In this document: positions 2,476-55,094 of the stretch, one piece after another | Layout: each line of letters opens with the position of its first letter | How positions within the stretch are numbered: position 1 is the stretch's first letter | Assembly (NCBI RefSeq): GCF_902713615.1 | Contig: NC_052151.1 | Location: 104,057,304 to 104,121,303 of the forward strand | Reading direction: 5' to 3' | Source of the DNA: Scyliorhinus canicula | Lineage: Eukaryota | Length of the DNA stretch: 64,000 bases | Notes under the pieces: model-generated | The model's database searches: none | Seen by the model: only the letters and a program-made list of their open reading frames with translations | Told to the model about the DNA's origin: nothing | Position numbers and translations under genes: made by a program

Positions 2476-3174
2476 GCATAGTGTTTTGGCCTAAGTTTGT
2501 GGTGTGGGTTAAGTTGTAAAGAAATGAGTCAAAGACGAGTGTGTGTACGAATGAGGTGAATTCAGGATGAAATCAAACAAGAATGTACAGCAGGGTGGGG
2601 ACGGTTAGAGTGCACAACTGTGGGAAAAATAGGCCATTTCAAAACTGTTTGTCACCCGAAAACACTGACAACCAGCAAAAAGAGAGAGATAGTTTTAAAG
2701 CAAAGCATTGTAGTCAGTGGAAGAACCACAAGAACAGAAATGATCCTTCTTTGGGAAGATTAAAGGACGTTGAAAACCGGTACTGCTGGGTTCAACTCAA
2801 GGTGGATGGACACTCCCCACTCCAAACCCCGTTATAAAAAAGGGCACAGGTACTGGGTTTTTTAACTTTATCAGATAAAACACATAGCAAGACAAATTCC
2901 CAAAATTGTTCAGAGAGCTGGGAAAATTAAAGATCTGAGAACCACATCACCCTATGAGCTGATACTAAATTAATTTGCCTCCTTACCCCGAGGAAAGTCC
3001 TTCATCCATTCTTGGACAAAGTCACAGTCAATATAGAAAATATGGTTTTCTGATTGGTGTTCAGGTTTGGTTGCAGTCAGTCCCAATAGCCCTTTAAAAA
3101 TCTGCATGGATTTAACGGAGATGAACAAAGCTGTGGAACAGGAGATCTTCCTAATAGTCTCAGTGGACAAGAGT

Positions 3175-4640
3175 TCCTCCACACTTCCAAGAATCCTGCC
3201 TTTAACCCTGTATTCAGCATTCAAATTCGACCTTCCAAAAAGAATCACTTCACATTTATCTAGGTTGAACTCTATCTGCCATTTCTCAGCCCAGCTCTGC
3301 ATCCTGTCAATGTCCTGTTGTAACCTGCAACAGTCCTCAACACTATCTACAACTCCACCAACCTTCATGTCATCAGCAAACTTACTAACCCACCCTTCCA
3401 CTTCCCCATCCAAGTCATTTATAAAAATCACAAAGACGCCACTGGTCACCGACATCCAGGCAGAATACTTTCCATCCACTACCACTCGCTGTCTTCTTTC
3501 AGCCAGCCAATTCTGAATGCAGACAGCCAAACTTCCCTGTATCCCATGCCCCCTAACTTTCTGAATGAGCCTACCATGGGGAACCTTATCAAATGCCTTA
3601 CTGAAATCCATATACACCACATCCACTGTCCAACCTTCAATGTGTCTCATCACATCCTCAAAAAACTTAATGAGGGTTGTAAGGCATGACCTGTCCCTCA
3701 CAAAGCCATGCTGACTATCTTTGATCAAACTACATTTTTCTAAATCATAAATTTTATCTCTCAAAATCCTTTCCAGTATTTTGCTGACCAGAGACGGAAG
3801 ACTGACTGCTCTGTAATTCCCAGGGATTTCCCTTTCTTGAACAGGGGAACAACATTTTCCTCCCTCCCTCCAGTGGAGAGTGAGGACGCAAGGTTTATCG
3901 CCAACAGTGCAGTAATCTTCTCCTTCGCTTTCCATAGTAACCATGGGCATATCTCATTGGCCCTGGGGACTTATCTATCTTGATGCTTTTCAAAATTTCC
4001 AGCACAGCTCCTTCTTAATATCAACCTGTTCGAGCCCATTAACCTGGTTCACGCTGTTCTTATGAGCAACAAGGTCCCTCTCTCGAGTGAAGACAGAAGC
4101 AAAATATTCATTTAGGACCTCTCCCACCTCCTCAGACTCTAGGCACAAGTTCTCGCCACTATTCGTGATCAGCCTTACTCTCACTCTGTTCATCCTCTTA
4201 TTTCTCACACAATTATAGAATGCTTTGGGGTTTTCCCTAATCCTTCTCACCAGGGTTTTTTCTTGCCCCCTTCTAGCTGTCCATTTTTGAGTTCATTTCT
4301 GGCTCCCTTGTAACCCTCTAGAGTCGTGCCAGATCCTTGCTTCCCCAACCAGAAGTAAGCTTTCTTCTTCCTCTTGACTGGAAGCTCCACTTCTCTTGTT
4401 ATCCAAGGCTCCTTCACCTTACCATTCCTTCCTCGTCTCAGTGAGACAAAACTATCCAGCACTCGCAGCAAGTGCTCCTTAAACAACCCCCACATTACTG
4501 TTGTGCATTTCCCCAAAAACATCCATTCCCAATTTATGCTCCTCAGTTCCTGTCGAACAACAGTATAATTTTCACTCCCCCAGTGAAATACCTTCCCATA
4601 CTGTCTGTTCCTATCCCGCTCCATGATGATGGTAAACGTC
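3175..4640 (-). mobile_element. CR1 LINE ORF2 fragment (RT), degenerate
   Basis: NYRAVSLPSLVSKILE, QHGFVRDRSCLT, DVVYMDFSKAFDKVPH, KFADDMKVGG, FNLDKCEVILFG; upstream pieces 3990-4657. Confidence 0.92.
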
Positions 4641-5095
4641 GTTGGAATGGTGAACAAGTGTTCATGTTCCTACAATTTGCAGAGGTCAATTAGCCTTTGA
4701 GATAGCTTTTGAGACAGGGTCAACAGTGGTGGTAGAAAATGGACCAGCAAGTGCTTTTGGAAAGATTAAACAACTTTCAACCTCTTTTGAAATTAAGGCC
4801 CAGGCTGACCAACCACGGTAGCAGCAGATGCGAATTATCTACAGGTTTGGGGGAAGTACTATTTCAAGGGCAAAAAGATGGCAAAGATACAATGGCAAAG
4901 ATGGCAATGCTTCTAACCTGTTTCTGCCAGTGAGCGAATGAAAGCCACAGTTGGAAATTAAACTTTAGCAGCAACATGGGTGTGTAGAAAAAGTTCAGAT
5001 TATGTTATGGGATTATGTCTCAAAGCAGACCAAACACCATGAGTCCCTCTTCTGACCATGTAAGAAATTGAGAGGCTGCTGCTCAGAAAGATTCA

Positions 5096-5294
5096 CAGTA
5101 AAAAGTCTTACAACACCAGGTTAAAGTCCAACAGGTTTGTTTCAAACACGAGCTTTTGGAGTGCAGCTCCTTCTTCACCCGAGGAAGGAGCTGCGCTCCG
5201 AAAACTCGTGTTTGAAACAAACCTGTTGGACTTTAACCTGGTGTTGTAAGACTTCTTACTGTGCTCACCCCAGTCCAACACCGGCATCTCCACA
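5096..5294. mobile_element. Palindromic Penelope-derived (pLTR-like) non-autonomous element with degenerate hammerhead motif
   Basis: Two inverted arms meet at ...ccttcttcacccgaggaagg... Flanked by the 13-bp direct repeat tcagaaagattca (5083-5095, 5295-5307). Confidence 0.8.
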
Positions 5295-5503
5295 TCAGAA
5301 AGATTCAGACAAAGATGGACAAGTTGGGACTCGATCACAGTTTGTGAAAGGAAAATGCTGAACAACAGACACATCATCAGAAGGAATCAATTAGGTGGTT
5401 TTAAACTTCATTGAGGAGTTGAAGCATCTACATCCTTAATCAATCAGCATAAATCAGCTCCTACAAAAATGGTGCATTAAGTAAAATTAGCCCAGTTAAA
5501 CTC

Positions 5504-6091: not shown

Positions 6092-7811
6092 TTTTTTATT
6101 TGGGCATTTGCAAGTTTTTATAATAATAACAATGCCATGAACATGATACAATAAACCTCCCCCCCCCCCCCCCATCCCAATCTTTACACACCCCAACCAT
6201 GAAACAACAATCCAGCCCTCTTAATCCCACCTCCTTTGGAATTCTACGTCTGCCGACATTTTAATTTTCCCCGAGAAAGTCAACGAATGCCTGCCACCTC
6301 CGGGTGAACCCTACCATTGACCCTCTTAAGGTAAACTTTATTTTCTCAACCCAGCTGTGTCACTAACCCAGGTCTCTACACTAGGGAGCTTACATTCTCT
6401 CCACATTAATAAGATCCGTCTCCGGGCTAGCAGCGAGGCAAAGGCCAAGACGTTGGCCTCTTTTGTCCCCGAAACACCCAGCTCTTCCAACACTCCATAG
6501 ATCGCCACCTCCGGAGTTGGCACCACCCGTGTTTTGAGTACCATGGACATTGCCTGAGCGAACCCCTGCCAGAATCCTCTGAGCTTCGGGCATGCCCAAA
6601 ACATGTGGACATGATTTGCTGCGCTTCCCGCGCACCTCGTACACCTGTCCTCTCTCGCGAAAAGTTTGCTCATCCGGGCCACAGTCATGTGTGCCCGGTA
6701 GACTACCAGGAATTGTATCAGGCTAAGTCTGGCACATGATGAGGATGCATTAACCCTGCTTAGGGCATCCACCCACAGACCCACCTCTATCTTTCCTCCT
6801 AGCTCGTCCTCCCACTTGCCCTCGAGCTCCTCCACCGGGGTTTCCTCCACCTCCCTAAGCTCCTGGTAAATATCTGATACCTTTCCCTCTCCTCTCCCAC
6901 GAGGTACTGGAGACAACTCGTGCTGTATCCCCCGTAGCGGCAGCAGTGGGAAGGCCGGAACCTGCTTTCTCAAGAAGTCTTGCACCTGCAAATACCAAAA
7001 CCCGTTCCCTGCTGGCAATTCAAATTTATCCTCCAATGTTTTCAAGCTGGGAAAGCTCCCATTTATAAATAGATCCCCCATCCTTCTAATTCCTGCCCTT
7101 TGCCATCTCTGGGACCCACCATCCAGCCTACCCAGTACACACCGATGATCGTTATAAATCAGGGTCCAAACCGATGCTCCCTCCACTCTCTTGTATCTCC
7201 TCCACTGCCCCCAGATTCTCAGAGCCACCACCACCACCGGACTTGTGGAGTATCGGGCCGGCGAGAATGGAAGAGGTGCTGTTATCAATGCTCCCAAACT
7301 TGTGTCTTTGCATGATGCCGCCTCCATCTGCTCCCATATTGACCTCTCCCACACTACCCACCTCCTAATCATGGCTATATTAGCCGCCCAGTTATAATTG
7401 CAGAAGTTCGGCAGCGCCAACCCACCGTCCCCACCGACTGCGCAACACTTTCTTCACTCACGGGGTTTTACCCGCCCACACAAAGCCCGAAATACTCTTA
7501 TTCACCCACTTGAAAAAAGGTCCTTGGGATGAAGATGGGGAGGCACTGAAAGACAAACAGAAATCTGGGGAGGACCATCATTTTCATGGTCTGTACCCTC
7601 CCGCCAGTGATAGTGGGAGCATGTTCCATCTCTTAAAGTCTTCTTACATTTATTCTACCAGCCGGGATAGGTTTAACTTGTGCAGTGCTTCCCATTCCCG
7701 GGACACCTGGATTCCCAGATACCGAAAGCTCTTTCCTACCATTCTAAGCGGCAGCTCTACCAGTCTCTTCTCCTGCCCTCTTGCCTGAATCACAAACATC
7801 TCGCTACTCTC

Positions 7812-14699: not shown

Positions 14700-17600
14700 T
14701 GTATGAGTTAACCGAAGGTTTAAGACATGGCAAGAGAACCCAGACCCGAGTCATGCTCCTCGTGTGCGATGTGGGAGCTCAGTGACACGTCCACTGTCCC
14801 TGGCTCCTTCACGTGCAAGAAGTGTGTCCAGTTGAAGCTCCTGTTAGACCGCTTGATGGCTCTGGAGCTGCGGATGGACTTACTTTGGAGCATCCGCGAT
14901 GTTGAGGATGTCGTGGATAGCACGTTTAGCGAGCTGGTCACACTACAGGTGAAAGTTACTGAAGGAGATAGAAAATGGGTGGCCAAAAGACAGAGCAAGA
15001 GTAGAGGCAGTGCAGGTGTCCCCTGCGGTCATCTCCCTGCAAAACAGATATACCGCTTTGGACACTGTTGAGGGACATGACTTACCCGGGGAAGGCAGCA
15101 GCAGCCAGGTTGAACAGCCAGCTGTCGTGGTGCACATAGACACCAACGATATAGGTAAAAAACAGGACGAGGTCCTACAAGCTGAATCCAGGGAGTTAGG
15201 AGTTAAACTAAAAAGTAGGACCTCAAAGGTAGTAATCTCAGGATTGCTACCTGTGCCACGAGCTAGTCATATTAGGAATGTCAGGATAGAGAGGATGAAT
15301 CGTGGCTCAAGAGATGGTGTAAGAGGGAGGGATTCAAATTCCTGGGGCATTGGAACCGGTTCCGGGGGAGGTGGGACCAGTACAAACTGGACGGTCTGCA
15401 CCTGGGCAGGACTGGAACGGATATCCTGGGGGGGGGGGGGGGGGAATGGTGTTTGCTAGAGCTGTTGGGGAGGATTTAAACTAATGTGGCAGGGGGATGG
15501 GAACCAATGCAGGAATGTCAAAAAGTAGTAACACAGGGTCAGACACAAAAGGCAGTAAGGGGGAAAGTGTAAGGCAGAGAAGCCATAGTCAAAAATCAAA
15601 AAGGGCGACAGTATAAGGTGCAGTGATTGAGGGGAGCTCAGTGAATAGGCCCACTAATATCAAAAGGGATAAAACGGGAAGTAAAAACTTGTTACATGAA
15701 GATATGGGGTCAATGATAAGGAAAATTAGGAGAAAAGTTAAGAGGAAATATAACTTAGCAGAGGTTACTGATTGCGGTGGTAAGATTCAAAACAGAGGTA
15801 TAAAAGCCAACTTAAATGTACTTTACCTGAATGCTTGTAGTATTTGGAATAAGGTAAATGAGTTGATGGCGCAAATCATCTCGAATGACTATGATTTAGT
15901 GGCCATTACTGAAACATGGTTCAAGAATGGTCAAGACTGGGAGTTAAATATCCGAGGGTATCAAACTATTCAGAAGGACAGAGTGAATGGTAAGGGAGGT
16001 GGTGTAACTCTGTTATTTAAGGAGACATCCGGGCAATAGTAAGGGATGTCATAGGTGCTATGGTGGATAAGATTGAATCCATTTGGGTGGAAATCTGGAA
16101 TAGTAAGGCGAAAAAGTCACTGATAGGAGTAGTCTATCGGCCACCAAATAGTAACATTATGGTGGGGCAGACAATAAACAAAGAAATAACTGATGCATGT
16201 AGAAATGGTACAGCGGTTATCATGGGGGATTTTAATCTATATGTTGATTGGTTTAACCAGGTCGGTCAAGGCAGCCTCAAGGAGAAGTTTATAGAATGTA
16301 TCCACGATAATTTCCGAGAACAGTATGTAATGGAACCTACGAGGGAACAAGCGGTCCTAGATCTGGTCCTGTGTAATTAGACAGGATGATTTAATGATCT
16401 CATATTTAGGGATCCTCTCACAAGGAGCGATCACAATATGGTGGAATTTAAAATACAGATGGAGGGTGAGAAGGTAAAATCAAACAATAGTGTTTTGTGC
16501 TTAAACAAAGGAGGTTACAATGGGATGAGAGAAGAACTAGCTACGGTAGACTGGCAGCAAATACTTTTTGGTAAAACAGTTGAGGAACAGTGGAGAACTT
16601 TCCAAGCGATTTTTCACAGTGCTCAGCAAAGGTTTATACCAACAAAAGGAAGGACGATAGAAAGAGGGAAAATCGACCGTGGATATCGAAGGAAATAAGG
16701 GAGGATATCAAATTGAAGTAAAAATCATACAAAGTGGCAAAGGTTAGTGGGAGACTAGTGGACTGGGAAATCTTTAGGGGGCAACAGAAAGCTACTAAAA
16801 AAGCTATAAAGAAGAGAAAGGTAGATTATGAGAGTAAACTTGCTCAAAATATAAAAACAGATAGTAAAAGTTTCTACAAATATATAAAACAAAAAAGAGT
16901 GGCTAAGGTAAATATTGGTCCTTCAGAGGATGAGAAGGGAGATTTAATAACGGGAGATGAGGAAATCGCTGAGGAACTGAAGAGGTGTTTTGGGTCAGTC
17001 TTCACAGTGGAAGACACAAATAACATGCCAGTGACTGATAGAAATGAGGCTATGACAGGTGAGGACCTTGAGAGGATTGTTATCACTAAGGAGGTAGTGA
17101 TGGGCAAGCTAATGGGGCTAAAGGTAGACAAGACGCCTGGCCCTAATGGAATTCATCCCAGAGTGCTAAAAGAGATGGCTAGGGAAATTGCAAATGCACT
17201 AATGATAATTTACCAGAATTCACTAGACTCTGGGGTGGTCCCGGCGGATTGGAAATCAGCAAACGTGACACCACTGTTTAAAAAAGGAGGTAGGCAGAAA
17301 GCAAGTAATTACAGGCCAGTTGGCTTAACTTCGGTAGTAGGGAAGATGCTGGAATCTATCATCAAGGAAGAAATAGCGAGGCATCTGGATAGAAATTGTC
17401 CCATTGGGCAGACGCAGCATAGGTTCATAAAGGGCAGGTCGTGCCGAACTAATTTAGCGGAATTTTTTGAGGACGTTACCAGTGTGGTAGATGACTGGGA
17501 GCCAATGGATGTGGTATATCTGGATTTCCAGAAAGCCTTTGACAATGTGCCACACAAAAGGTTGCTGCATAAGATAAAGATGCATGGCATTAAGGGTAAA

Positions 17601-17880
17601 GTAGTAGCATGGATAGAGGATTGGTTAATTAACAGAAAGCAAAGAGTGGGGATTAATGGGTGTTTCTCTGGTTGGCAATCAGTAGCTAGTGGTGTCCCTC
17701 AGGGATCAGTGTTGGGCCCACAATTGTTCACAATTTACATAGATGATTTGGAGTTGGGGACCAAGGGCAATGTGTCCAAGTTTGCAGATGACACTAAGAT
17801 GAGTGGTAAAGTGAAAAGTGCAGTGGATACTGGAAGTCTGCAGAGGGATTTGGATAGGATAAGTGAATGGGCTAGGGTCT
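14700..17880 (+). mobile_element. CR1 LINE with ORF1 (CxxC..CxxC zinc finger/zipper plus internally deleted SGNH esterase) and ORF2 (APE+RT), 3'-truncated
   Basis: MAREPRPESCSSCAMWE...CKKCVQLKLL; VVVHIDTNDIG; LYLNACSI...VAITETW; VYRPPNS...MGDFN; YRPVGLTSVVGK...LDFQKAFD...[10 protein letters not shown]...KFADDTK. Confidence 0.95.
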
Positions 17881-19058
17881 GCCACCATCCTCTACCTGCT
17901 CCATGATAATGTGCAAACCATGATCCTGACTAATGGATTCATCACAGAGCAAATTTGCTTTCGGATTGGGCTCAAGCAAGGTTGTCGCACCTACGCTCTT
18001 CTCGACCATCTGTTTCATCTCACAGCAAGCTCTTTACTGGAGGGAGTGGAGATAAACTACAGGACAAACAGGACTCAGTTTAACCTTGCCACTTGTAGTA
18101 CATGTCCAAGTTTGTCCCATCCTCTCTCATTGAACTACAGTAGGCAGACGCTGCCTGCATTTGTGCAGACTCGGAGGGCAATGGGCTTTACACTAAATAG
18201 CTGTAAGACAAATGTCCCGTACCAAGCTGCTCCACCACACAGCACTGTCTCCCAGTTATCAAAATCCATGACTACGCTTTGGATAACATGGACCATTTTC
18301 CATATCTTAGAAGCTACTGTCAAACAAGGGCAGACAACAAGGTTTAACACCACCTTCAGTGTGCCAGCGCTCCCTGCGGTCACCTGAGGAAGAGAGTGTT
18401 TGAAGATCAGGGCCTCGTATCTGGCACCGAGCTCATGGTCTGCAAGGCAGTGATAATGATACCTGCCCTCCTAATTGGCTCCGTGACATGGACTCTGTAC
18501 AGCAGGCACCTCAAAACCATAGACGTAACACCAGCAGCACCTCCGCAAGATCCTACAAATCTCTTGGCCAATGTCAGTGTTCTTCTTTAGGCCAACATTC
18601 TGAGTATCAAAGCATTGACCACAAACAATCAGCTCCATTGGGTGGGCCACGTTGTCCACATACCTGATAGAAGGCTCCCAAAACAAACACTCTGCTCAGA
18701 CTTGGACATGACAAGTGAGCCCCAGGCCAGCATAAGAAACACTTCAAGGACATCCTCAAAGCATCCTTCAGGAAAATGAACCTACACTTCGGACTCCCTA
18801 GCCCAAAATGGAAGAAAAGCATCTGGGGAGGAGCTGAACAACTCGAGCTTCATCACCAAGAGCAAGCTGAAGTCAAGTGCCATCAGCGAAAGGAGTGCAT
18901 GGCAACCTGGGCACCCCACCCACCCGTTCCTCCAACCACCGTCTTGCCCACCTGCGACAGAGACTTGGTCACACATTGGACTTCTCAGTCACCCGAGAAC
19001 TAACTTTTAGTGTGGAAGCAACCCATCCTTGTTTCTGAGGGGTTGCCCAAGGAGGAGG
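17881..19058 (+). mobile_element. RTE-clade LINE 3' fragment, degenerate
   Basis: ILYLLHDNVQ...GLKQGC; GVEINYRT; GFTLNSCKTNV; QLHWVGHVVHIPD-RLPKQ-type C-terminus; 3' end gaggggttgcccaaggaggagg. Confidence 0.85.
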
Positions 19059-20475: not shown

Positions 20476-22426
20476 CATCAGCAGCAGGGTATGTGTGTGT
20501 TCTGCTCCAGCTGAAGTGAAATGGAGGTAAGATCACATGGCACACTTCCCTTAAGGTGATGCCATGCTGCTATCCCTTAAAGACATAATGTAACACAGAC
20601 AATTTAAGGTTCAGTGTGCAAAACTGCAAATAGCACTCCAGAAAGGATCTGGATCAAGGTTCCATGGAACAAAAAACACTGGCCCACTTTTGTTTTCCAA
20701 CTCATTTCAGATTAAGGCAGACTTTTCAGAAACCTTTTCAATTATTTTTCTGTAGTTGTGCTCCATCTTGGAATGATATATCAATCTCGGCAAGCAAACC
20801 TTTCCATCTTTCATAGTCTATCAACTGCTGATGACAACACTTCCTCTTCTCCTGTCCACATCCAAGTGCAGGTGAGATTTAACAACATCTCATCGAGGTG
20901 TCAGCATCTGACAGTGCAGCCCTTTCTCAGAAATGCAATGAAATCACAGCCTACAATTTGTGCCCCATTCATGGAAGGATCTTAAATTTTCTGACCAGAA
21001 GCAGAAATGCTTGTATGGCTCAAATTTTATACCTAAATCTCACTCTCAGAAGTAGCAAGGATTGGATTTCCCTCTCCAAAGGCACTTCTGCAAAAGTGGG
21101 GAAAAAAGGGGAGGAAATTTGCATCATTCTACCAGATCTATTTACTGCTAGGAGTGATGATAAGTAGTGAATGTCCTTGCCCGAATTTGGGCAAATAGAA
21201 ATCACAGTGATCTGGTTACATTTTTCATCATGATACTATTGTATTATTACAATGCCAGCACTTAGCAGACATCCAGAATTTGTAGGCAGTTGGAAGTCTA
21301 AGAATGATAACCTATGCCCCTAAAAACTCTTGAGGGATAATAATCTGCCGGTTCTACAAGAGTAGAATTTGTGAATTCAAAAATTCTTAACGTTGCAGTT
21401 GAACCTGTCTTTTGCAGCATCTCCAGTCTTTCTACCCTTAACCTCACCCACAACAATACAGGTGGAAATACCATCAGGAGGTCAAAATGAAAATTAACTA
21501 GATTGATCCAGTCACCAACTTCATGCAAGCAACCATATTTTATGTCCAAACTCATGGCTCATACCATTTGTCAGAAAGTATTAGCCCTCATTTCCCCCAA
21601 CACATTCTTGCGGACACTGCCATAATGCATCTTTGTCATCCTATCTTATTTTTTCTTTTCTCAAAATATCCTTCAACATTTGGACAGGTTGCCCCGATAT
21701 TCAGTTACTATGTAAATTCTTCTGTTGGATGAATTAATTAAAAACAAATTATAATAGGTCACATCACAAGGTGCTAAATGTCACTTTAGAAACTGTACAA
21801 ATTCATTTAAAACATGTTCGAGATAACCTTCGCCACCACTGAGATTAATTATGCTATTAATTGTAAAATGTCCTGTAATTGAAAGCAAAATTCCATTTTA
21901 GTTTCTTTGCCTACTTTCTCCACAGAAAAGCAATTTCTTCACAAAAGAAAAGATGACAAGGTCATTCAAGCAATAGTTTTTCAATGATTTGCAATCCTTC
22001 AACTGAGTCGCTTTATCTTGGCAATAGCTCCATAAAAATGCTTGCATTTCAATCTCCTTTTGACAATATGTTGCAAAGATAATTGGTGTTCTTCAGACTT
22101 ACTTTAGCATTACAGCGATAACGATTGGCATTATCTAATCTCCCTTTGTTGCCTGCTTAAATATGTCCTTAAAAAGCTGTTCAACACACTCGTGTTCGAC
22201 AATTTCTGTTGAATTTATTTCTGTCACATCAGGTTAACACCTGGCAAATGCTGTCCATAAAAATAAATTCATGAAATTCTTACCAATAAGATGACTTATT
22301 CATGTTCATGCATCTGACATTATCTGCCAATAGACACCAAGATGAGGAGATGCAGGCGTTGGACTGGGGTGAGCACAGTAAGAAGTCTTACAACACCAGG
22401 TTAAAGTCCAACAGGTTTGTTTCAAA

Positions 22427-22461
22427 CACGAGCTTTCGGAGCACTGCTCCTTCCTCAGGTG
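22427..22461 (-). ncRNA. Minimal type I hammerhead ribozyme motif (mirror copy, sense to the host gene)
   Basis: Exact reverse complement of 22470-22504. Confidence 0.7.
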
Positions 22462-22469
22462 AGGAATTT

Positions 22470-22504
22470 CACCTGAGGAAGGAGCAGTGCTCCGAAAGCT
22501 CGTG
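22470..22504 (+). ncRNA. Minimal type I hammerhead ribozyme motif (Penelope-type)
   Basis: CAC-CTGAGGA-A-GGAGC(agt)GCTCC-GAAA-GCTC-GTG: core CUGAnGA/GAAA, 5-bp stem II, palindromic AGCT in place of stem III, CUC triplet, CAC/GTG stem I. Confidence 0.7.
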
Positions 22505-22675
22505 TTTGAAACAAACCTGTTGGACTTCAACCTGGTGTTGTAAGACTTCTTACAATAGACACCAAGATAGAATAGGCCACATTTTTCCAGTAATTTTTCT
22601 GCCACACAAAATTGAAGCCTAGTCACACAACTCAGTAGTGAAGCTCAAAATTGCACAGAATATTAATTTTCTCAC

Positions 22676-22798
22676 CTTGTGGCACATTGTGCTGCAAATG
22701 CAACATATCTTCACTCCTGACATGCCTCCAATCAAAATCATCTTCCTGATCTTGCCAATATTCACATGGTTCCAGGCCATCATCAAATGTACAGCCTC
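22676..22798 (-). CDS. PTPRK: Internal coding exon (probable exon 2) of a type IIB receptor protein tyrosine phosphatase, N-terminal part of the MAM domain, most like PTPRK
   Basis: Minus strand reads tttttgcttacAG|GA GGC TGT ACA TTT GAT GAT GGC...GTG CCA CAA G|GTGAG. 123 bp, phase 1-1, canonical acceptor and donor. Peptide (G)GCTFDDGLEPCEYWQDQEDDFDWRHVRSEDMLHLQHNVPQ(G) fits the MAM start C-x-F-D...C-x-Y-x-Q...DDF-x-W and aligns without gaps to recalled human PTPRK (GGCTFDDG...PQG). Absent from the ORF track because it is short. The paralogue (K vs U/M/T) is less certain than the family. Confidence 0.8.
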
Positions 22799-25179: not shown

Positions 25180-25630
25180 TAGAATTTGCCTGGACAAGTA
25201 CAGTTCCAATAACACTCAAGGAGTTTGACTCCATCCAGGCCAAAGCGGCGTACTTGATTGGGACTCCAACCACCATATTTAGCATTCACTCCCTCACCAC
25301 CAACATACTTTGGCAGCAGTGTGGAGATGTCGGCGTTGGACTGGGGTGAGCACAGTAAGAAGTCTTATAACACCAGGTGAGAATTCACTAGGTTTGTTTC
25401 AAATCACTAGCTTTCGGAGCACTGATCCTTTCTCACCCGAGGAAGGAGCAGCGCTCCGAAAGTTAGTGATTTGAAACAAACCTGTTGGACTTTAACCTGG
25501 TGTTGTAAGACTTCTTACTGCAATCCGGAATACTCACTGCAGCTACTCACCAAGGCTCCTTTACAGTATTTTCCAAATACATAACCTTTACCATCGAGGA
25601 CACGGGTAAGCAAAATACAGCCTGCATGTC
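25180..25630 (+). mobile_element. Old L2/CR1-group LINE 3' end, interrupted by a Penelope-derived palindrome
   Basis: gcctggacaagtacagttccaataacactcaaggagtttgactccatccaggccaaagcggcgtacttgattgg (AW...TLK..DSIQAKAAYLIG) ... ctcaccaaggctcc. Confidence 0.6.
25320..25520. mobile_element. Palindromic Penelope-derived element, degenerate hammerhead (CCGAGGA core)
   Basis: gtggagatgtcggcgttggactgggg...ctttcggagc...ctcacccgaggaaggagcagcgctccgaaag...gtaagacttcttactg; no clear TSD. Confidence 0.8.
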
Positions 25631-35865: not shown

Positions 35866-38800
35866 AACATAGAACATTACAGTGCAGTACAGGCCCTTCG
35901 GCCCTCGATGTTGCGCCGACGTGTGAAACCCCTCTAAAGCCCATCTACACTAGTCCCTTATCGTCCATATGGCTATCCAATGACCATTTGAATGCGTTTA
36001 GAGTTGGTGAGTCCACTACTGTTGCAGGCAGGGCATTGCACGTCCTTACTACTTTCTGAGTAAAGAACCTACCTCTGACATCTGTCCTATATCTATCTCT
36101 CCTCAATTTAAAGCTATGTCCCCTCGTGCTAGACATCACCATCCAAGGAAAAAGGCTCTCACTGTCCACCGTATCTAATCCTCTGATCATCTTGTATGCC
36201 TCAATTAAGTCACCTCTTAACCTTCTTCTCTCTAACGAAAACAGCCTCAAGTCCCTCAGCCTTTCCTCATAAGATCGTCCCTCCATACCAGGCAACATCC
36301 TGGTAAATCACCTCTGTACCCTTTCCAATGCTTCCACATCCTTCCGATAATGCGGCGACCAGAACTGCACGCAATACTCCAAATGCGGCCGCACCAGAGT
36401 TTTGTACAACTGCAACATGACCTCATGGCTCCGAAACTGAATTCCTCTACCAATAAAAGCGAACACACCGTACGCCTTCTTAACAACCCTCTCAACCTGG
36501 GTGGCAACTTTCAGGGATCTATGGACATGGACACCGAGATCGCTCTGCTCATCCACACTACCAAGAATCTTACCATGAGCCCAGTACTCTGTCTTCCTGT
36601 TATTCTTTCCAAAATGAATCACTCACACTTTTCTGCATTAAACTCCATTTGACACCTGTCAGCCCAGCTCTGCAGCTTATCTATGTCCCTCTGCAACTTC
36701 TAACATCCTTCTGCACTGTCCACATCTCCACCAACTTTAGTGTCATCTGCAAATTTACTCACCCATCCTTCTACGCCCTCCTCCAGGTAATTTATAAAAA
36801 TGACAAACAGCAGTGGCCCCAAAACAGATCCCTGTGGTACACCACTAGTAAATGGACACCAGTCTGAACATTTCCCATCAACCACCACCCTTTGTCTTCT
36901 TACAGCTAACCAATTTCTGATTCAAACTGCTAAATCACCCTGAATCCCATGCCTCTGTATTTTCTGCAATAACCTACCATGGGGAACCTTATCAAACGCT
37001 TTACTAAAATCCACATACACCACATCAACTGATTTACCCTCATCCACCTGTTTGGTCACCTTCTCAAAGAACTCAATAAGGTTTGTGAGGCACGACCTAC
37101 CCTTCACAAAACCATGTTGACTATCTCTAATCAAATTATTCCTTTCCAGATGATTATACATCCTATCTCTTATAAACCTTTCCAAGACTTTGCCCACAAC
37201 AGGAGTAAGGCTCACTGGTCTATAGTTACCGGGGTTGTCTCTACTCCCCTTCTTGAACAAGCGGACAACATTTGCTATCCTCCAGTCTTCTGGCACTATT
37301 CCTGAAGACAAAGATGACTTAAAGATCAAAGCCAAAAGCTCAGCAATCTCCTCCCTAGCTTCCCAGAGAATCCTAGGATAAATCTCATCCGGCCCAGGGG
37401 ACTTATCTATTTTAACACTTTCCAGAATCGCTAACACCTCCTCCTTATGTACCTCAAGCCCTTCTAGTCCAGTAGCCTGTATCTCAGTATTCTCCTCGAC
37501 AACATTGTCTTTTTCCTGTGTGAATACAGACAAAAATACTCATTTAGCACCTCTCCTATCTCCTAGGACTCCACGCACAACTTCCCACTACTATCCTTGA
37601 CTGGCCCTACTCTTGCCCTAGTCATTCTTTGATTCCTGACATATCTACAGAAAGCTTTAGGGTTATCCTTGATCCTACCTGCCAAAGACTTCTCATGTCC
37701 CCTCCTGGCTCTTCTTACCTCTCTCTTTCGATCCTTCCTAGCCAACTTGTAACTCTCAAGCACCCTAACTGAACCATCACGTCTCATCATTACATAAGCC
37801 TCCTTCTTCCTCTTGACAAGTGTTTCAACTGCTTTAGTAAACCATGTTTCCCTCGCTCGACCACTTCCTCCCTGCCTGACAGGTACATACTTATCAAGGA
37901 CACGCAGTAGCTGTTCCTTGAACATGCTCCACATTTCGATTGTGCCCATCCCCTGCACTTTTCCTCTCCAGCCGATGCATCCTAAGTCTTGCCTCATCTC
38001 ATCATAATTGCCTTTCCCCCAGATATTACTTTTGCCTTGCGGTATATACCTATCCCTTTCCATCACTAAAGTAAACATAATCGAATTGTGGTCACTATCA
38101 CCAAAGTGCTCACCTACCTCCAAATCGAACACCTGTCCTGGTTCATTACCCAGTACCAAATCCAATACGGCCTCGCCTCTCGTTGGCCTATCTACATACT
38201 GCGTCAGGAAACTCTCCTGCATACATTGGACAAAAAGGGACCCATCTAAAGTACTCGAACTATAGTGTTTCCAGTCAATATTTGGAAAGTTAAAGTCCCC
38301 CATAACAACTACCCTGTTACTTTCACTCCTATCCAGAATCATCTTTGCAATCCTTTCCTCTACGTCTCTGGAACTTTTCGGAGGCCTATAGAAAACCCCT
38401 AACATGGTGACCTCCTTTCCTGTTTCTAAACTCAGCCCATACTACCTCAGTAGTCGAGTCCTCATCAAACGTCCTTTCTGCCACCGTAATACTGTCCTTG
38501 ACTACCAATACCACCCCTCCCCCTGAGCTTACTGAAATATCTAAACCCTGGCACCTCCAACAACCATTCCTCTCCCTGCTCTATCCATGTCTCCGAAATT
38601 GCCACAACATCGAAGTCCCGGGTACAAACCCATGCCACAAGTTGACCCACCTTATTCCGGATGCTGCTGGCATTGAAGTAGACACACTTTAAACCACCTT
38701 CCTTCCTGCCGGTACACTCCTGCAACTTTGAAACCTTACTCATGACCTCACTACTCTCAACCTCTTGTGTACTGGAGCTACAATTCAGGTTCCCAATCCC

Positions 38801-53806: not shown

Positions 53807-53921
53807 CATGTGGAGATGCCGGCATTGGACTGGGGTGAGTACAGTAAGAAGTCTTACAACACCAGGTTAAAGTCCAACATGTTTGTTTCAAGCTTTCGGA
53901 GCACTGCTCCTTCCTCAGGTG
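53807..53921 (-). mobile_element. Single-arm Penelope-derived pLTR unit beginning at the hammerhead motif
   Basis: Minus strand CACCTGAGGAAGGAGCAGTGCTCCGAAAGCTTGAAAC...CATCTCCACATG; direct repeat taatttaac at 53798-53806 and 53923-53931. Confidence 0.8.
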
Positions 53922-55094
53922 CTAATTTAACAACAGTGCAAGAGTTAAGACAGGTAGAGGGGAGGTAGAGCCGAGTTTCGTCTGCTTAAATGGGAAAACA
54001 AATTCTTTGCTTTCGAATAATTTTGCCGTGTTTATCAGCAGTAGTGCTCAATTTATTATTCTGCCAATTTCATTATTCTTGCTTTAACATGAAATGTCAA
54101 AGCTGCCCTAAATTTGTATTTGCAATGAAGAGGATGCGATTACCAATTTCTAGTATTTATTCAATCTGTTGTTTCCATGGTAGGAGAGAGAGAGAGAAAA
54201 TAAAGCTGGGGGCAACACTCAAAACTATGTAGTCCCTCATTCAAGTTGCCTTTAATGAGCTACATATATGCCTTTATAAATAGTAGCATGTACACACTTC
54301 AAGTCCAAGGAGAGATAAAAGCACTAGGCACTATCATCTACGACATAAACACTGCGGTCAGAAGCAAACATCAAATTTCTGCCCACAGCCAGTAGCCATC
54401 AGGGAAAGTCCAAGTATCATCAATTAAAAGCGTTCTCAGTGGTAAGGGCTTGGAAACGGTTTCAGACAGTCAAAGTGAAATCTCAATCTGTTCGGAATTC
54501 ACTGATCTCAGCCAATATAGCAATTGGCTTCAATCCCTTGGAACCCATTTTTTTTTGCCTGTTTGATCTACTAGCTGGAGGAAAAGAAAGACTGTATTAT
54601 GATCCTATTACTTGCAAGTAAAGTAATGCAGCCACATTCTGTGGTCAACTACTTCCCATGAATTAAAGGACTCTGCAGTATGTTAACTTAATTCCAAGCT
54701 GAGATTCAAACCTACACATTCCAAGAAACCTCTCAGCTGTCGGAGAAGATATTAGGCAAGCTTGGCAAAAGCAAAAGATATTTTAAAAAAGGAGAGGGAG
54801 TTGGAGAATCTCAGAGAATAAATTCTAGTGATTAAGCCTGAACATCTGAAATTATGTCAAACGGTCAGAGGACCACAGAGTTATCTTGTGTTGAAGAGCA
54901 GAGATAGGATGGGGCAAGTCCATGAGGGAGTTTAAACTCAAAAGAATTTTAAATTTGGGGTGTTAAAAGGATCTGGTCAGATGCTGAATTAATGACTTTC
55001 TGAATGTGACATTATTACAAAGAATAGTGTCTCGCCCTTCAAACTATGCAATGGTGTTGAAAACCTGAAATTTCCTGTCTAAATGGTACTGAGG

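Follow-up and report, generated by a model that had tools for sequence, protein, structure and literature searches.

The window analysed here is a stretch of 64,000 nt from the genome of Scyliorhinus canicula (contig NC_052151.1, positions 104,057,304 to 104,121,303 of the forward strand), and all coordinates below are positions in it. An intron of a gene for a PTPRK-like receptor phosphatase in this window contains a palindromic insert (22344-22552). This insert most probably arose by recent retroposition, as one copy of a non-coding, hyper-abundant mini-element that is mobilised by a Penelope-like element (PLE); its minimal hammerhead ribozyme motif would come from the source sequence of the family and be inert in the focal copy. 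In the mechanism that we propose, the unit of the family, of ~85-119 nt, would have the minimal hammerhead at its 5' end, the region where reverse transcription starts at its 3' end, and an optional 34-nt tail, and would be mobilised in trans by the reverse transcriptase (RT)/GIY-YIG machinery of a PLE. Insertion as two head-to-head units, one with and one without the tail, would have given the 85-bp near-perfect palindrome and the 16-bp target duplication, and the palindrome would have been formed at that step. On either strand the antisense arm would be made first and the sense motif would pair into the duplex. The RNA, probably also that of the focal locus, would then be subject to editing by ADAR and possibly to other processing of double-stranded RNA (dsRNA), rather than to self-cleavage.

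The insert is a fold-back with one asymmetric side (Table 1). A repeat search of the window returned two inverted arms of 85 nt each, 99% complementary with one mismatch and separated by the 6 nt GGAATT. An exact 16-nt direct repeat, CAATAGACACCAAGAT, flanks the insert and constitutes its target-site duplication (TSD), the final AT of which may be microhomology with the start of the element. A 34-nt extension is found on the left side only. The anatomy given in a first-pass annotation of this DNA (85-bp arms with one mismatch, a 6-nt spacer and a 16-bp TSD) is borne out by these data, as is its description of a retroelement without an open reading frame (ORF) that gives the same motif from either strand. 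The earlier observation of a fold-back with two hammerhead motifs is confirmed.

Both strands of the insert were examined for the motif. Each arm, read outward from the centre, carries at its inner end the 35-nt string CAC-CTGAGGA-A-GGAGC-AGT-GCTCC-GAAA-GCT-C-GTG; on the minus strand, C17 lies opposite G22430. The published features of PLE minimal hammerheads are the catalytic boxes, an unpaired nucleotide between A9 and G10.1, a G10.1-C11.1 pair, a palindromic 15.2-16.2 segment without a real helix III, and a short helix I (Cervera & De la Pena, 2014; PMC4209133). In both focal arms, the boxes C3-U4-G5-A6-N7-G8-A9 and G12-A13-A14-A15.1 are present in type I order (CTGAGGA...GAAA), and an extra A between A9 and G10.1 (22480 on the plus strand, 22451 on the minus strand) is followed by the GGAGC/GCUCC helix. 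The G10.1-C11.1 pair is invariant in 7/7 arms of the family in the window; the focal motif has the AGCU palindrome without a helix III hairpin, U16.1 followed by C17, and a short helix I. Judged from its sequence, the focal motif thus has all the listed features. The arm string CAC-CTGAGGA-A-GGAGC...GAAA-GCTC-GTG of the first-pass annotation was recovered on both strands by sequence and by descriptor, and the extra A that it had noted after A9, seen on both strands, matches a published feature.

The descriptor was a relaxed one for minimal hammerheads, requiring helix I of at least 2-3 bp, a CUGANGA box, an optional extra base, helix II of at least 4 bp, a GAAA box and a palindromic insert of 0-6 nt, followed by U and H. 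On both strands of the 64-kb window it matched only the two focal-arm motifs, and it gave 0 matches in 300 (200 + 100) Markov-1 randomisations of the window. A descriptor for U3-A8 core-variant hammerheads had no match in the window.

The element belongs to a family. BLAST of the element against the window identified four copies with 7 arms in total, three of the four copies being head-to-head. In hammerhead sense, the 7-arm alignment gives the unit as 5'-(T)CACCTGAGGA...GACTTCTTAC(TG)-3', followed by the optional tail TGCTCACCCCAGTCCAACGCCGGCATCTCCACA. The 34-nt tail is found on one side only in 3/3 fold-backs of the window, and also in the solo unit. The lengths of the TSDs vary, with 16 bp in the focal copy, 13 bp in copy A and 9 bp in copy 53, the solo unit. 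Long terminal inverted repeats, a small size and the lack of an ORF are what would be expected of a fold-back DNA transposon of the miniature inverted-repeat transposable element (MITE) type. However, TSDs of 9, 13 and 16 bp, together with a solo half-unit that has a TSD of its own, effectively exclude a cut-and-paste element, and such an element would account neither for a tail on one side only, which can lie on either side relative to the loop, nor for the varying inner junctions of the inverted partner. We regard a MITE-type origin as exceedingly improbable.

A family-wide pile-up extends the architecture of the proposed PLE-mobilised unit beyond the window. Contigs of three DNA or probable-DNA runs and the raw reads of one RNA run were aligned to 22100-22468, a query that consists of left flank, tail, left arm and spacer and was chosen to contain no inverted repeat; 13,395, 18,093 and 2,398 contigs and 2,606 RNA reads aligned to the unit. 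Loose ends occur family-wide at 22341/2 and 22375/7, corresponding to two alternative outer (3') ends that are 34 nt apart, and the consensus beyond them is AT-rich with low agreement (0.34-0.40), as expected of unrelated flanks. The inner boundary of the family is fixed at 22462. At the opposite-strand joints, observed in three runs, the start of one partner always falls within 22458-22466, and the truncation point of the other ranges over 22392-22444. The arrangement is therefore that of a complete unit with a second unit, inverted and truncated to a variable extent at its 5' end, attached head-to-head. PLEs have an inverted, 5'-truncated copy adjoining their 5' end and a tail of 30-40 bp at one end (Craig et al., 2021; PMC8557442). 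The tail can occupy either end (PMC8557442), which is matched by copies A and B, where the orientation of the loop relative to the tail is opposite. In the biochemical work on the element PAc, the tail has been called unique to PLEs and has been explained by two RT start sites (PMC11167929).

The four copies differ in age and in the state of the motif. Identity between the arms is 98.7% in the focal copy, 93.6% in copy A and 86.1% in copy B, and the focal motif is intact because the copy is young compared with these two older ones, in which the core is broken. Only the focal copy keeps an intact motif within the window; copies A and B have CCGAGGA or GTGAAGA in addition to other changes. Copies A and B also share a shorter centre (CTCACCCGAGG, with the 4-nt loop ACCC; 5176-5190 and 25432-25446) that has C at hammerhead position U4. 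They apparently represent a minor subfamily, retroposed without an intact ribozyme core.

The family is extremely abundant. The summed word depth was 2.0-3.7 million on the arm vs 3.6-7.0 on the single-copy flank, from which we roughly estimate ~5x10^5 arm copies per genome, depth not being equal to copy number; the estimate agrees with 7 arms per 64 kb in a genome of a few Gb. Words of the family were found under three organism labels, and one of the runs (X12, organism B) shows no difference from the unique flank, which makes B the probable source species. Many other copies continue from the unit head, beyond 22462, into weakly consistent sequence rather than a fold-back (consensus ATGAAGAGGTA.GTTCCAGAAA.ATATATA, agreement 0.44-0.48). 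This sequence, which is absent from the window, may come from the upstream region of the parent or of a longer subfamily. In the literature on shark Penelope elements we found no description of this repeat family, and three sequence strings of the unit, looked up in full texts, matched only unrelated primers by coincidence. A conserved 30-mer of the arm gave 0 matches in a metagenome collection, which evidently lacks host DNA of this animal.

Variation within the family spares the core of the motif. The DNA variants listed at a share of at least 10% within the 35 nt are at 22430 (H17, C to A; 42-91%), 22443 and 22445 (loop II), and 22454 (N7, G to A). Position U4 (22457) is changed in only 2-3.5% of the DNA depth, and no other core position is among the listed variants. 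The family thus alternates between C and A at position 17, both of which are allowed. In a subfamily, the loose-end consensus GCTCCTTCAT has U at N7; the canonical CUGAUGA would result, provided that the remainder of the box, which lies outside the 30-letter consensus, is unchanged. All four listed variable sites fall on the six tolerant positions of the 35, which by chance would happen in ~3 in 10,000 cases, a figure that loses weight since the test was post hoc, 23 weaker rows are unlisted, only copies at least 80% alike were covered and one of the sites is a CpG. The pattern is suggestive of source copies that keep a hammerhead-compatible sequence. Sequence comparison thus points to a hammerhead motif that belongs to the source sequence of the family and would be neither a chance string nor an invention of the host.

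In the focal copy, the motif is predicted to be locked in the hairpin. ViennaRNA gives -167.9 kcal/mol for the hairpin of the plus strand and -170.6 kcal/mol for that of the minus strand, which has the sense of the pre-mRNA; with hammerhead helices I and II enforced, the energies are -108.5 (plus) and -106.5 (minus) kcal/mol, ~60 kcal/mol less stable than the hairpin, and the equilibrium probability of helix I is ~1e-42. The minimum free energy structure of the isolated 35-mer is not a hammerhead either: U4-N7 pair with C16.2-G1.1 (-10.5 vs -8.1 kcal/mol). Because the units are head-to-head, transcription of either strand places the sense motif in the 3' arm of the RNA. The complement of the motif is transcribed first, and the sense motif therefore zips into the long duplex. 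In RNA run X24, a single oligo-dT run, no place of read-end pile-up was found, including at the predicted cut. For comparison, the ribozyme of an anole PLE depends on its protein and gives no read ends in RNA-seq data, and insertion in vitro proceeds without it (PMC11167929). We infer that the focal motif is inert.

Three proposals of the first-pass annotation concern the action of the ribozyme. Cleavage of the intron, or an effect on splicing, is not borne out, given the ~60 kcal/mol advantage of the hairpin, the complement being made first, a helix I of 3 bp, the lack of a read-end pile-up and the lack of an Rfam match (see below). The cut predicted after C22501 does correspond to C17 of the plus-strand motif, but the host transcript is the minus strand, for which the relevant predicted cut is 22430/22429. 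Cleavage as a dimer had been proposed from the palindromic AGCT, which is present, and the palindromic 15.2-16.2 segment without a helix III is taken to imply that minimal hammerheads act as dimers (PMC4209133). However, one transcript contains one sense motif, and therefore no dimer can form in cis.

The reads of the family show the mark of dsRNA. In run X24, A>G or T>C accounts for 30 of the 47 listed change places, and these 30 show a strict asymmetry between the strands. For A>G, the counts on the two strands are 15/847 vs 247/833 at 22380 and 36/922 vs 308/709 at 22403; for T>C, they are 292/912 vs 3/703 at 22402 and 108/363 vs 0/385 at 22434. The changed share of RNA reads amounts to 20-43% at ~30 positions (22378-22462, in the family-wide pile-up); at the same places in two DNA runs it is mostly <2% (at most 5.4%). 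True polymorphisms of the family (22430, 22443, 22445 and 22414) are strand-symmetric. The pattern of A>G and T>C fits ADAR editing read from a reverse-stranded library. The edited sites include motif positions 22434 (A15.1) and 22457 (opposite U4), and therefore, in many transcripts of the family, the duplex formed in vivo extends across the ribozyme. The dsRNA/ADAR alternative that had been raised in the first-pass annotation is thus substantiated at the level of the family by strand-specific A>G in RNA reads.

The host gene is on the minus strand, and the motif at 22461-22427 thus has the sense of its pre-mRNA. The translation of the neighbouring exon, GCTFDDGLEPCEYWQDQEDDFDW, matches the Pfam MAM domain (E 8e-5), with PTPRK (8a1f, E 2e-7) as the best solved structure. 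The nearest end of the element lies 122 nt into the intron from the exon donor at 22675, in agreement with the distance of ~120 bp noted earlier. About half of the sampled words of 22554-22798 recur in many probable RNA runs under three organism labels; the recurring half is likely the exon half. The intact TSD and the single mismatch between the arms indicate that the insertion is recent. In a 1,212-nt contig of organism C, the match to the left flank (22100-22343, ~93%) ends exactly at 22343 and the contig continues for 441 nt, which suggests that the orthologous site is empty in a close relative, the aligned stretch having included the left of the two flanks.

A function for the host could be imagined from this location. 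The insert might have been recruited as a regulated ribozyme, comparable to the intronic hammerheads HH9/HH10 of amniotes, or as a hairpin RNA that acts on the PTPRK-like pre-mRNA, such as a precursor of a microRNA (miRNA) or of endogenous small interfering RNA, or a modulator of splicing. The position 122 nt downstream of a conserved exon donor, the minus-strand motif in the sense of the gene, the long perfect hairpin and a weak, hairpin-driven Rfam similarity to several miRNA families (27-28 bits) are in line with such a role. Nevertheless, the miRNA scores are far under the gathering thresholds (51-86 bits), the hammerhead fold is thermodynamically excluded according to ViennaRNA, and the focal copy is one of ~10^5 near-identical copies. 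The copy is also very young, with arms 98.7% alike and an intact TSD, and the organism C contig points to an empty site in a close relative. Recruitment is hence very unlikely, and nothing indicates either recruitment by the host gene or selection at the focal locus. The miRNA precursor models concerned (mir-290, mir-587, mir-3167 and mir-3934) gave generic hairpin matches that we rejected as chance, as we did the other, likewise hairpin-driven, sub-threshold Rfam matches at E<=10.

Several observations weigh against a PLE-mobilised hammerhead element. The Rfam hammerhead models (Hammerhead_1, Hammerhead_3, Hammerhead_II, HH9 and HH10) gave no match at gathering threshold in the whole window, nor at E<=10 on 701 nt or 52 nt, so that the covariance-model check proposed in the first-pass annotation turned out negative. 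Among the 7 arms of the window, 0 compensatory (double-sided) changes were found in helices I and II, which are nearly invariant, and the read pile-up yields single-column frequencies only. With 5 bp in helix II and 3 bp in helix I, the motif is at the short end of published minimal hammerheads. Two copies in the window carry CCGAGGA (U4 to C) yet appear to have been retroposed normally. No autonomous PLE with RT plus GIY-YIG is present among the window ORFs (Pfam on 19 ORFs), where the RT ORFs are of the long interspersed nuclear element (LINE) type with an APE endonuclease. Finally, the editing data represent the family as a whole, and the flank of the focal element in the intron has zero RNA depth in X24.

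Since the window lacks an autonomous PLE, the link to a Penelope parent rests on architecture and motif. The Penelope-derived fold-back of the first-pass annotation stands as far as variable TSDs, head-to-head units, the 34-nt tail and the features of minimal hammerheads are concerned, but a PLE ORF is missing from the window. The same observations leave room for a short interspersed nuclear element (SINE) mobilised by a LINE, with palindromes made by twin priming or template switching and a hammerhead-like string that is coincidental in the consensus of the family. LINE RT/APE fragments are frequent in the window, a variable TSD length is also typical of LINE-type target-primed reverse transcription, and Rfam reports no hammerhead. 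However, the outer ends lack a poly(A) or simple-repeat tail, and Rfam finds no tRNA, 5S or 7SL-like head. Signatures of PLEs are the two discrete 3' ends, which lie 34 nt from each other, and the systematic joining of units head-to-head at a fixed head position. A coincidental string is also difficult to reconcile with a motif that has all listed features of minimal hammerheads, with listed family variation that spares the core, and with the 0 descriptor matches in 300 randomised windows. We therefore consider a LINE-mobilised SINE improbable, and PLE mobilisation remains our preferred explanation.

Table 1. Features of the focal insert, the other family copies and the host exon, with positions in the window.
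Feature	Positions	Strand	Basis
Left TSD copy, CAATAGACACCAAGAT	22328-22343		Exact 16-nt repeat of 22553-22568
One-sided 34-nt 'tail', 3' extension of the long unit	22344-22377	- (5' to 3')	In the long arm of 4/4 window copies; corresponds to the optional 30-40-bp PLE tail (PMC8557442, PMC11167929)
Left inverted arm, body of the long unit, hammerhead-sense on -	22378-22462	-	Sequence, repeat search, arm alignment
Minimal type I hammerhead motif, host pre-mRNA sense; predicted scissile bond 22430/22429	22427-22461	-	Descriptor match and position-by-position mapping
Spacer GGAATT between the two unit heads	22463-22468		Repeat search
Right inverted arm, short unit without tail	22469-22553	+	Sequence, repeat search, arm alignment
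Minimal type I hammerhead motif, antisense to host gene; C17 = 22501	22470-22504	+	Descriptor match
Right TSD copy	22553-22568		Exact 16-nt repeat
Focal insert (whole)	22344-22553		BLAST
Family copy A, fold-back, tail on right, 13-bp TSD TCAGAAAGATTCA, cores broken (CCGAGGA / GTGAAGA)	5094-5295	+	BLAST and arm alignment
Family copy B, older fold-back (arms 86% alike), tail on left, cores broken, no clear TSD	25323-25520	-	BLAST and arm alignment
Family copy 53, solo long unit without inverted partner, 9-bp TSD TAATTTAAC, 7-nt deletion removing motif helix III/I	53810-53925	-	BLAST and arm alignment
Host exon, start of the MAM domain of a PTPRK-like receptor phosphatase	22676-22798	-	Donor GT 22675-22674, acceptor AG 22800-22799

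Elsewhere in the window, LINE fragments are located at 2970-3950 (minus), 16734-17906 (plus), 36922-37533 (minus), 37563-38405 (minus) and 15623-16039 (plus), with RVT_1 (E 1e-16 to 3e-27) and APE-type endonuclease matches, none of them with GIY-YIG. Copy A lies between two minus-strand ORFs, the RVT_1 ORF at 2970-3950 and an ORF at 6338-7420 that has a faint zf-RVT match, and an older copy of a retroelement may have been its insertion site. There are 142 N in the window.

At the level of the locus, the insert is of minor importance. It is a young repeat in an intron, probably neutral and of a kind that is ordinary in this genome. Nothing indicates cleavage or regulation of the PTPRK-like transcript by the insert, for which a role as an RNA-editing target is likelier than one as a working ribozyme. 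At the level of the family, three recently described hallmarks of PLEs (a minimal hammerhead, a head-to-head partner and a tail between two RT start sites) are compressed into ~200 bp, with about half a million arm copies. The reads of the family provide direct evidence of dsRNA-type editing of such PLE palindromes in vivo, including in the ribozyme core. The family could be a compact substrate for studies of trans-mobilisation by PLEs, and its recognition could aid the annotation of chondrichthyan genomes, in which assemblies break at palindromes of this kind and the palindromes resemble miRNA hairpins.

We speculate, tentatively, that head-to-head insertion has seeded ~10^5 ready-made hairpins that form the main source of intramolecular dsRNA and the dominant substrate of adenosine-to-inosine (A-to-I) hyper-editing in this cartilaginous fish, with the hammerhead free to act only in copies in which the inverted partner is truncated before the motif. 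If so, the ribozyme in the copies with a truncated partner would sit in the loop of the hairpin, with the arms extending helix I, and the family would be the single-insertion equivalent of the inverted Alu pairs of primates. Inverted Alu pairs in primate introns are substrates of ADAR and are hyper-edited from A to I. The two systems are alike in that abundant short retroposons form long intramolecular dsRNA in transcripts. They differ in that here each single insertion is already a hairpin, and in the machinery, which would be of the PLE type rather than LINE-1.

The motif resembles the minimal hammerheads of PLEs (PMC4209133) in its type I topology, boxes, extra nucleotide after A9, G10.1-C11.1 pair, AGCU palindrome and short helix I. 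The massive spread through the genome is also shared, as minimal hammerheads are dispersed genome-wide in consensus families, mostly outside full PLEs, and so is the presence of dual motifs, which have been reported close together on opposite strands (PMC4209133). In contrast to the published examples, helix II has 5 bp rather than 6-8 bp and helix I only 3 bp, the focal motifs are separated by only 8 nt in head-to-head orientation and are each other's full complement, and compensatory changes are absent from this young family, which has nearly invariant helices. Published minimal hammerheads cleave poorly even as dimers (PMC4209133).

With PLE insertions (PMC8557442, PMC11167929), the family shares the inverted partner at the 5' end, the optional one-sided 34-nt extension, the two discrete 3' termini and the AT-rich consensus of the flanks. 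The copies with a broken core, which have still been retroposed, are reminiscent of PAc, in which mutants of the hammerhead ribozyme still insert in vitro (PMC11167929); an intact hammerhead is apparently dispensable for insertion. Unlike in the PLEs described (PMC8557442), the unit is only ~85-119 nt long, without an ORF and without a direct pseudo-long terminal repeat (pLTR), and the position of the head is fixed, as in a defined non-autonomous element, rather than randomly truncated.

The animal non-LTR (long terminal repeat) retrozymes (Cervera & de la Pena, 2020; PMC7229834; Li et al., 2026; 10.64898/2026.07.22.740005) are likewise short, non-autonomous, hammerhead-bearing repeats. They have been proposed to derive from the pLTRs of PLEs, and their solo monomers are dispersed, including in introns (PMC7229834; 10.64898/2026.07.22.740005); retrozymes have been reported in one chondrichthyan (preprint 10.64898/2026.07.22.740005). 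However, retrozymes consist of tandem repeats of 170-400 nt arranged head-to-tail, carry canonical type I hammerheads and give rise to circular RNAs, whereas the focal copy is an inverted pair with a minimal hammerhead: its two motifs are on opposite strands, and the family as a whole has only one, rare, head-to-tail joint ('goes back 124').

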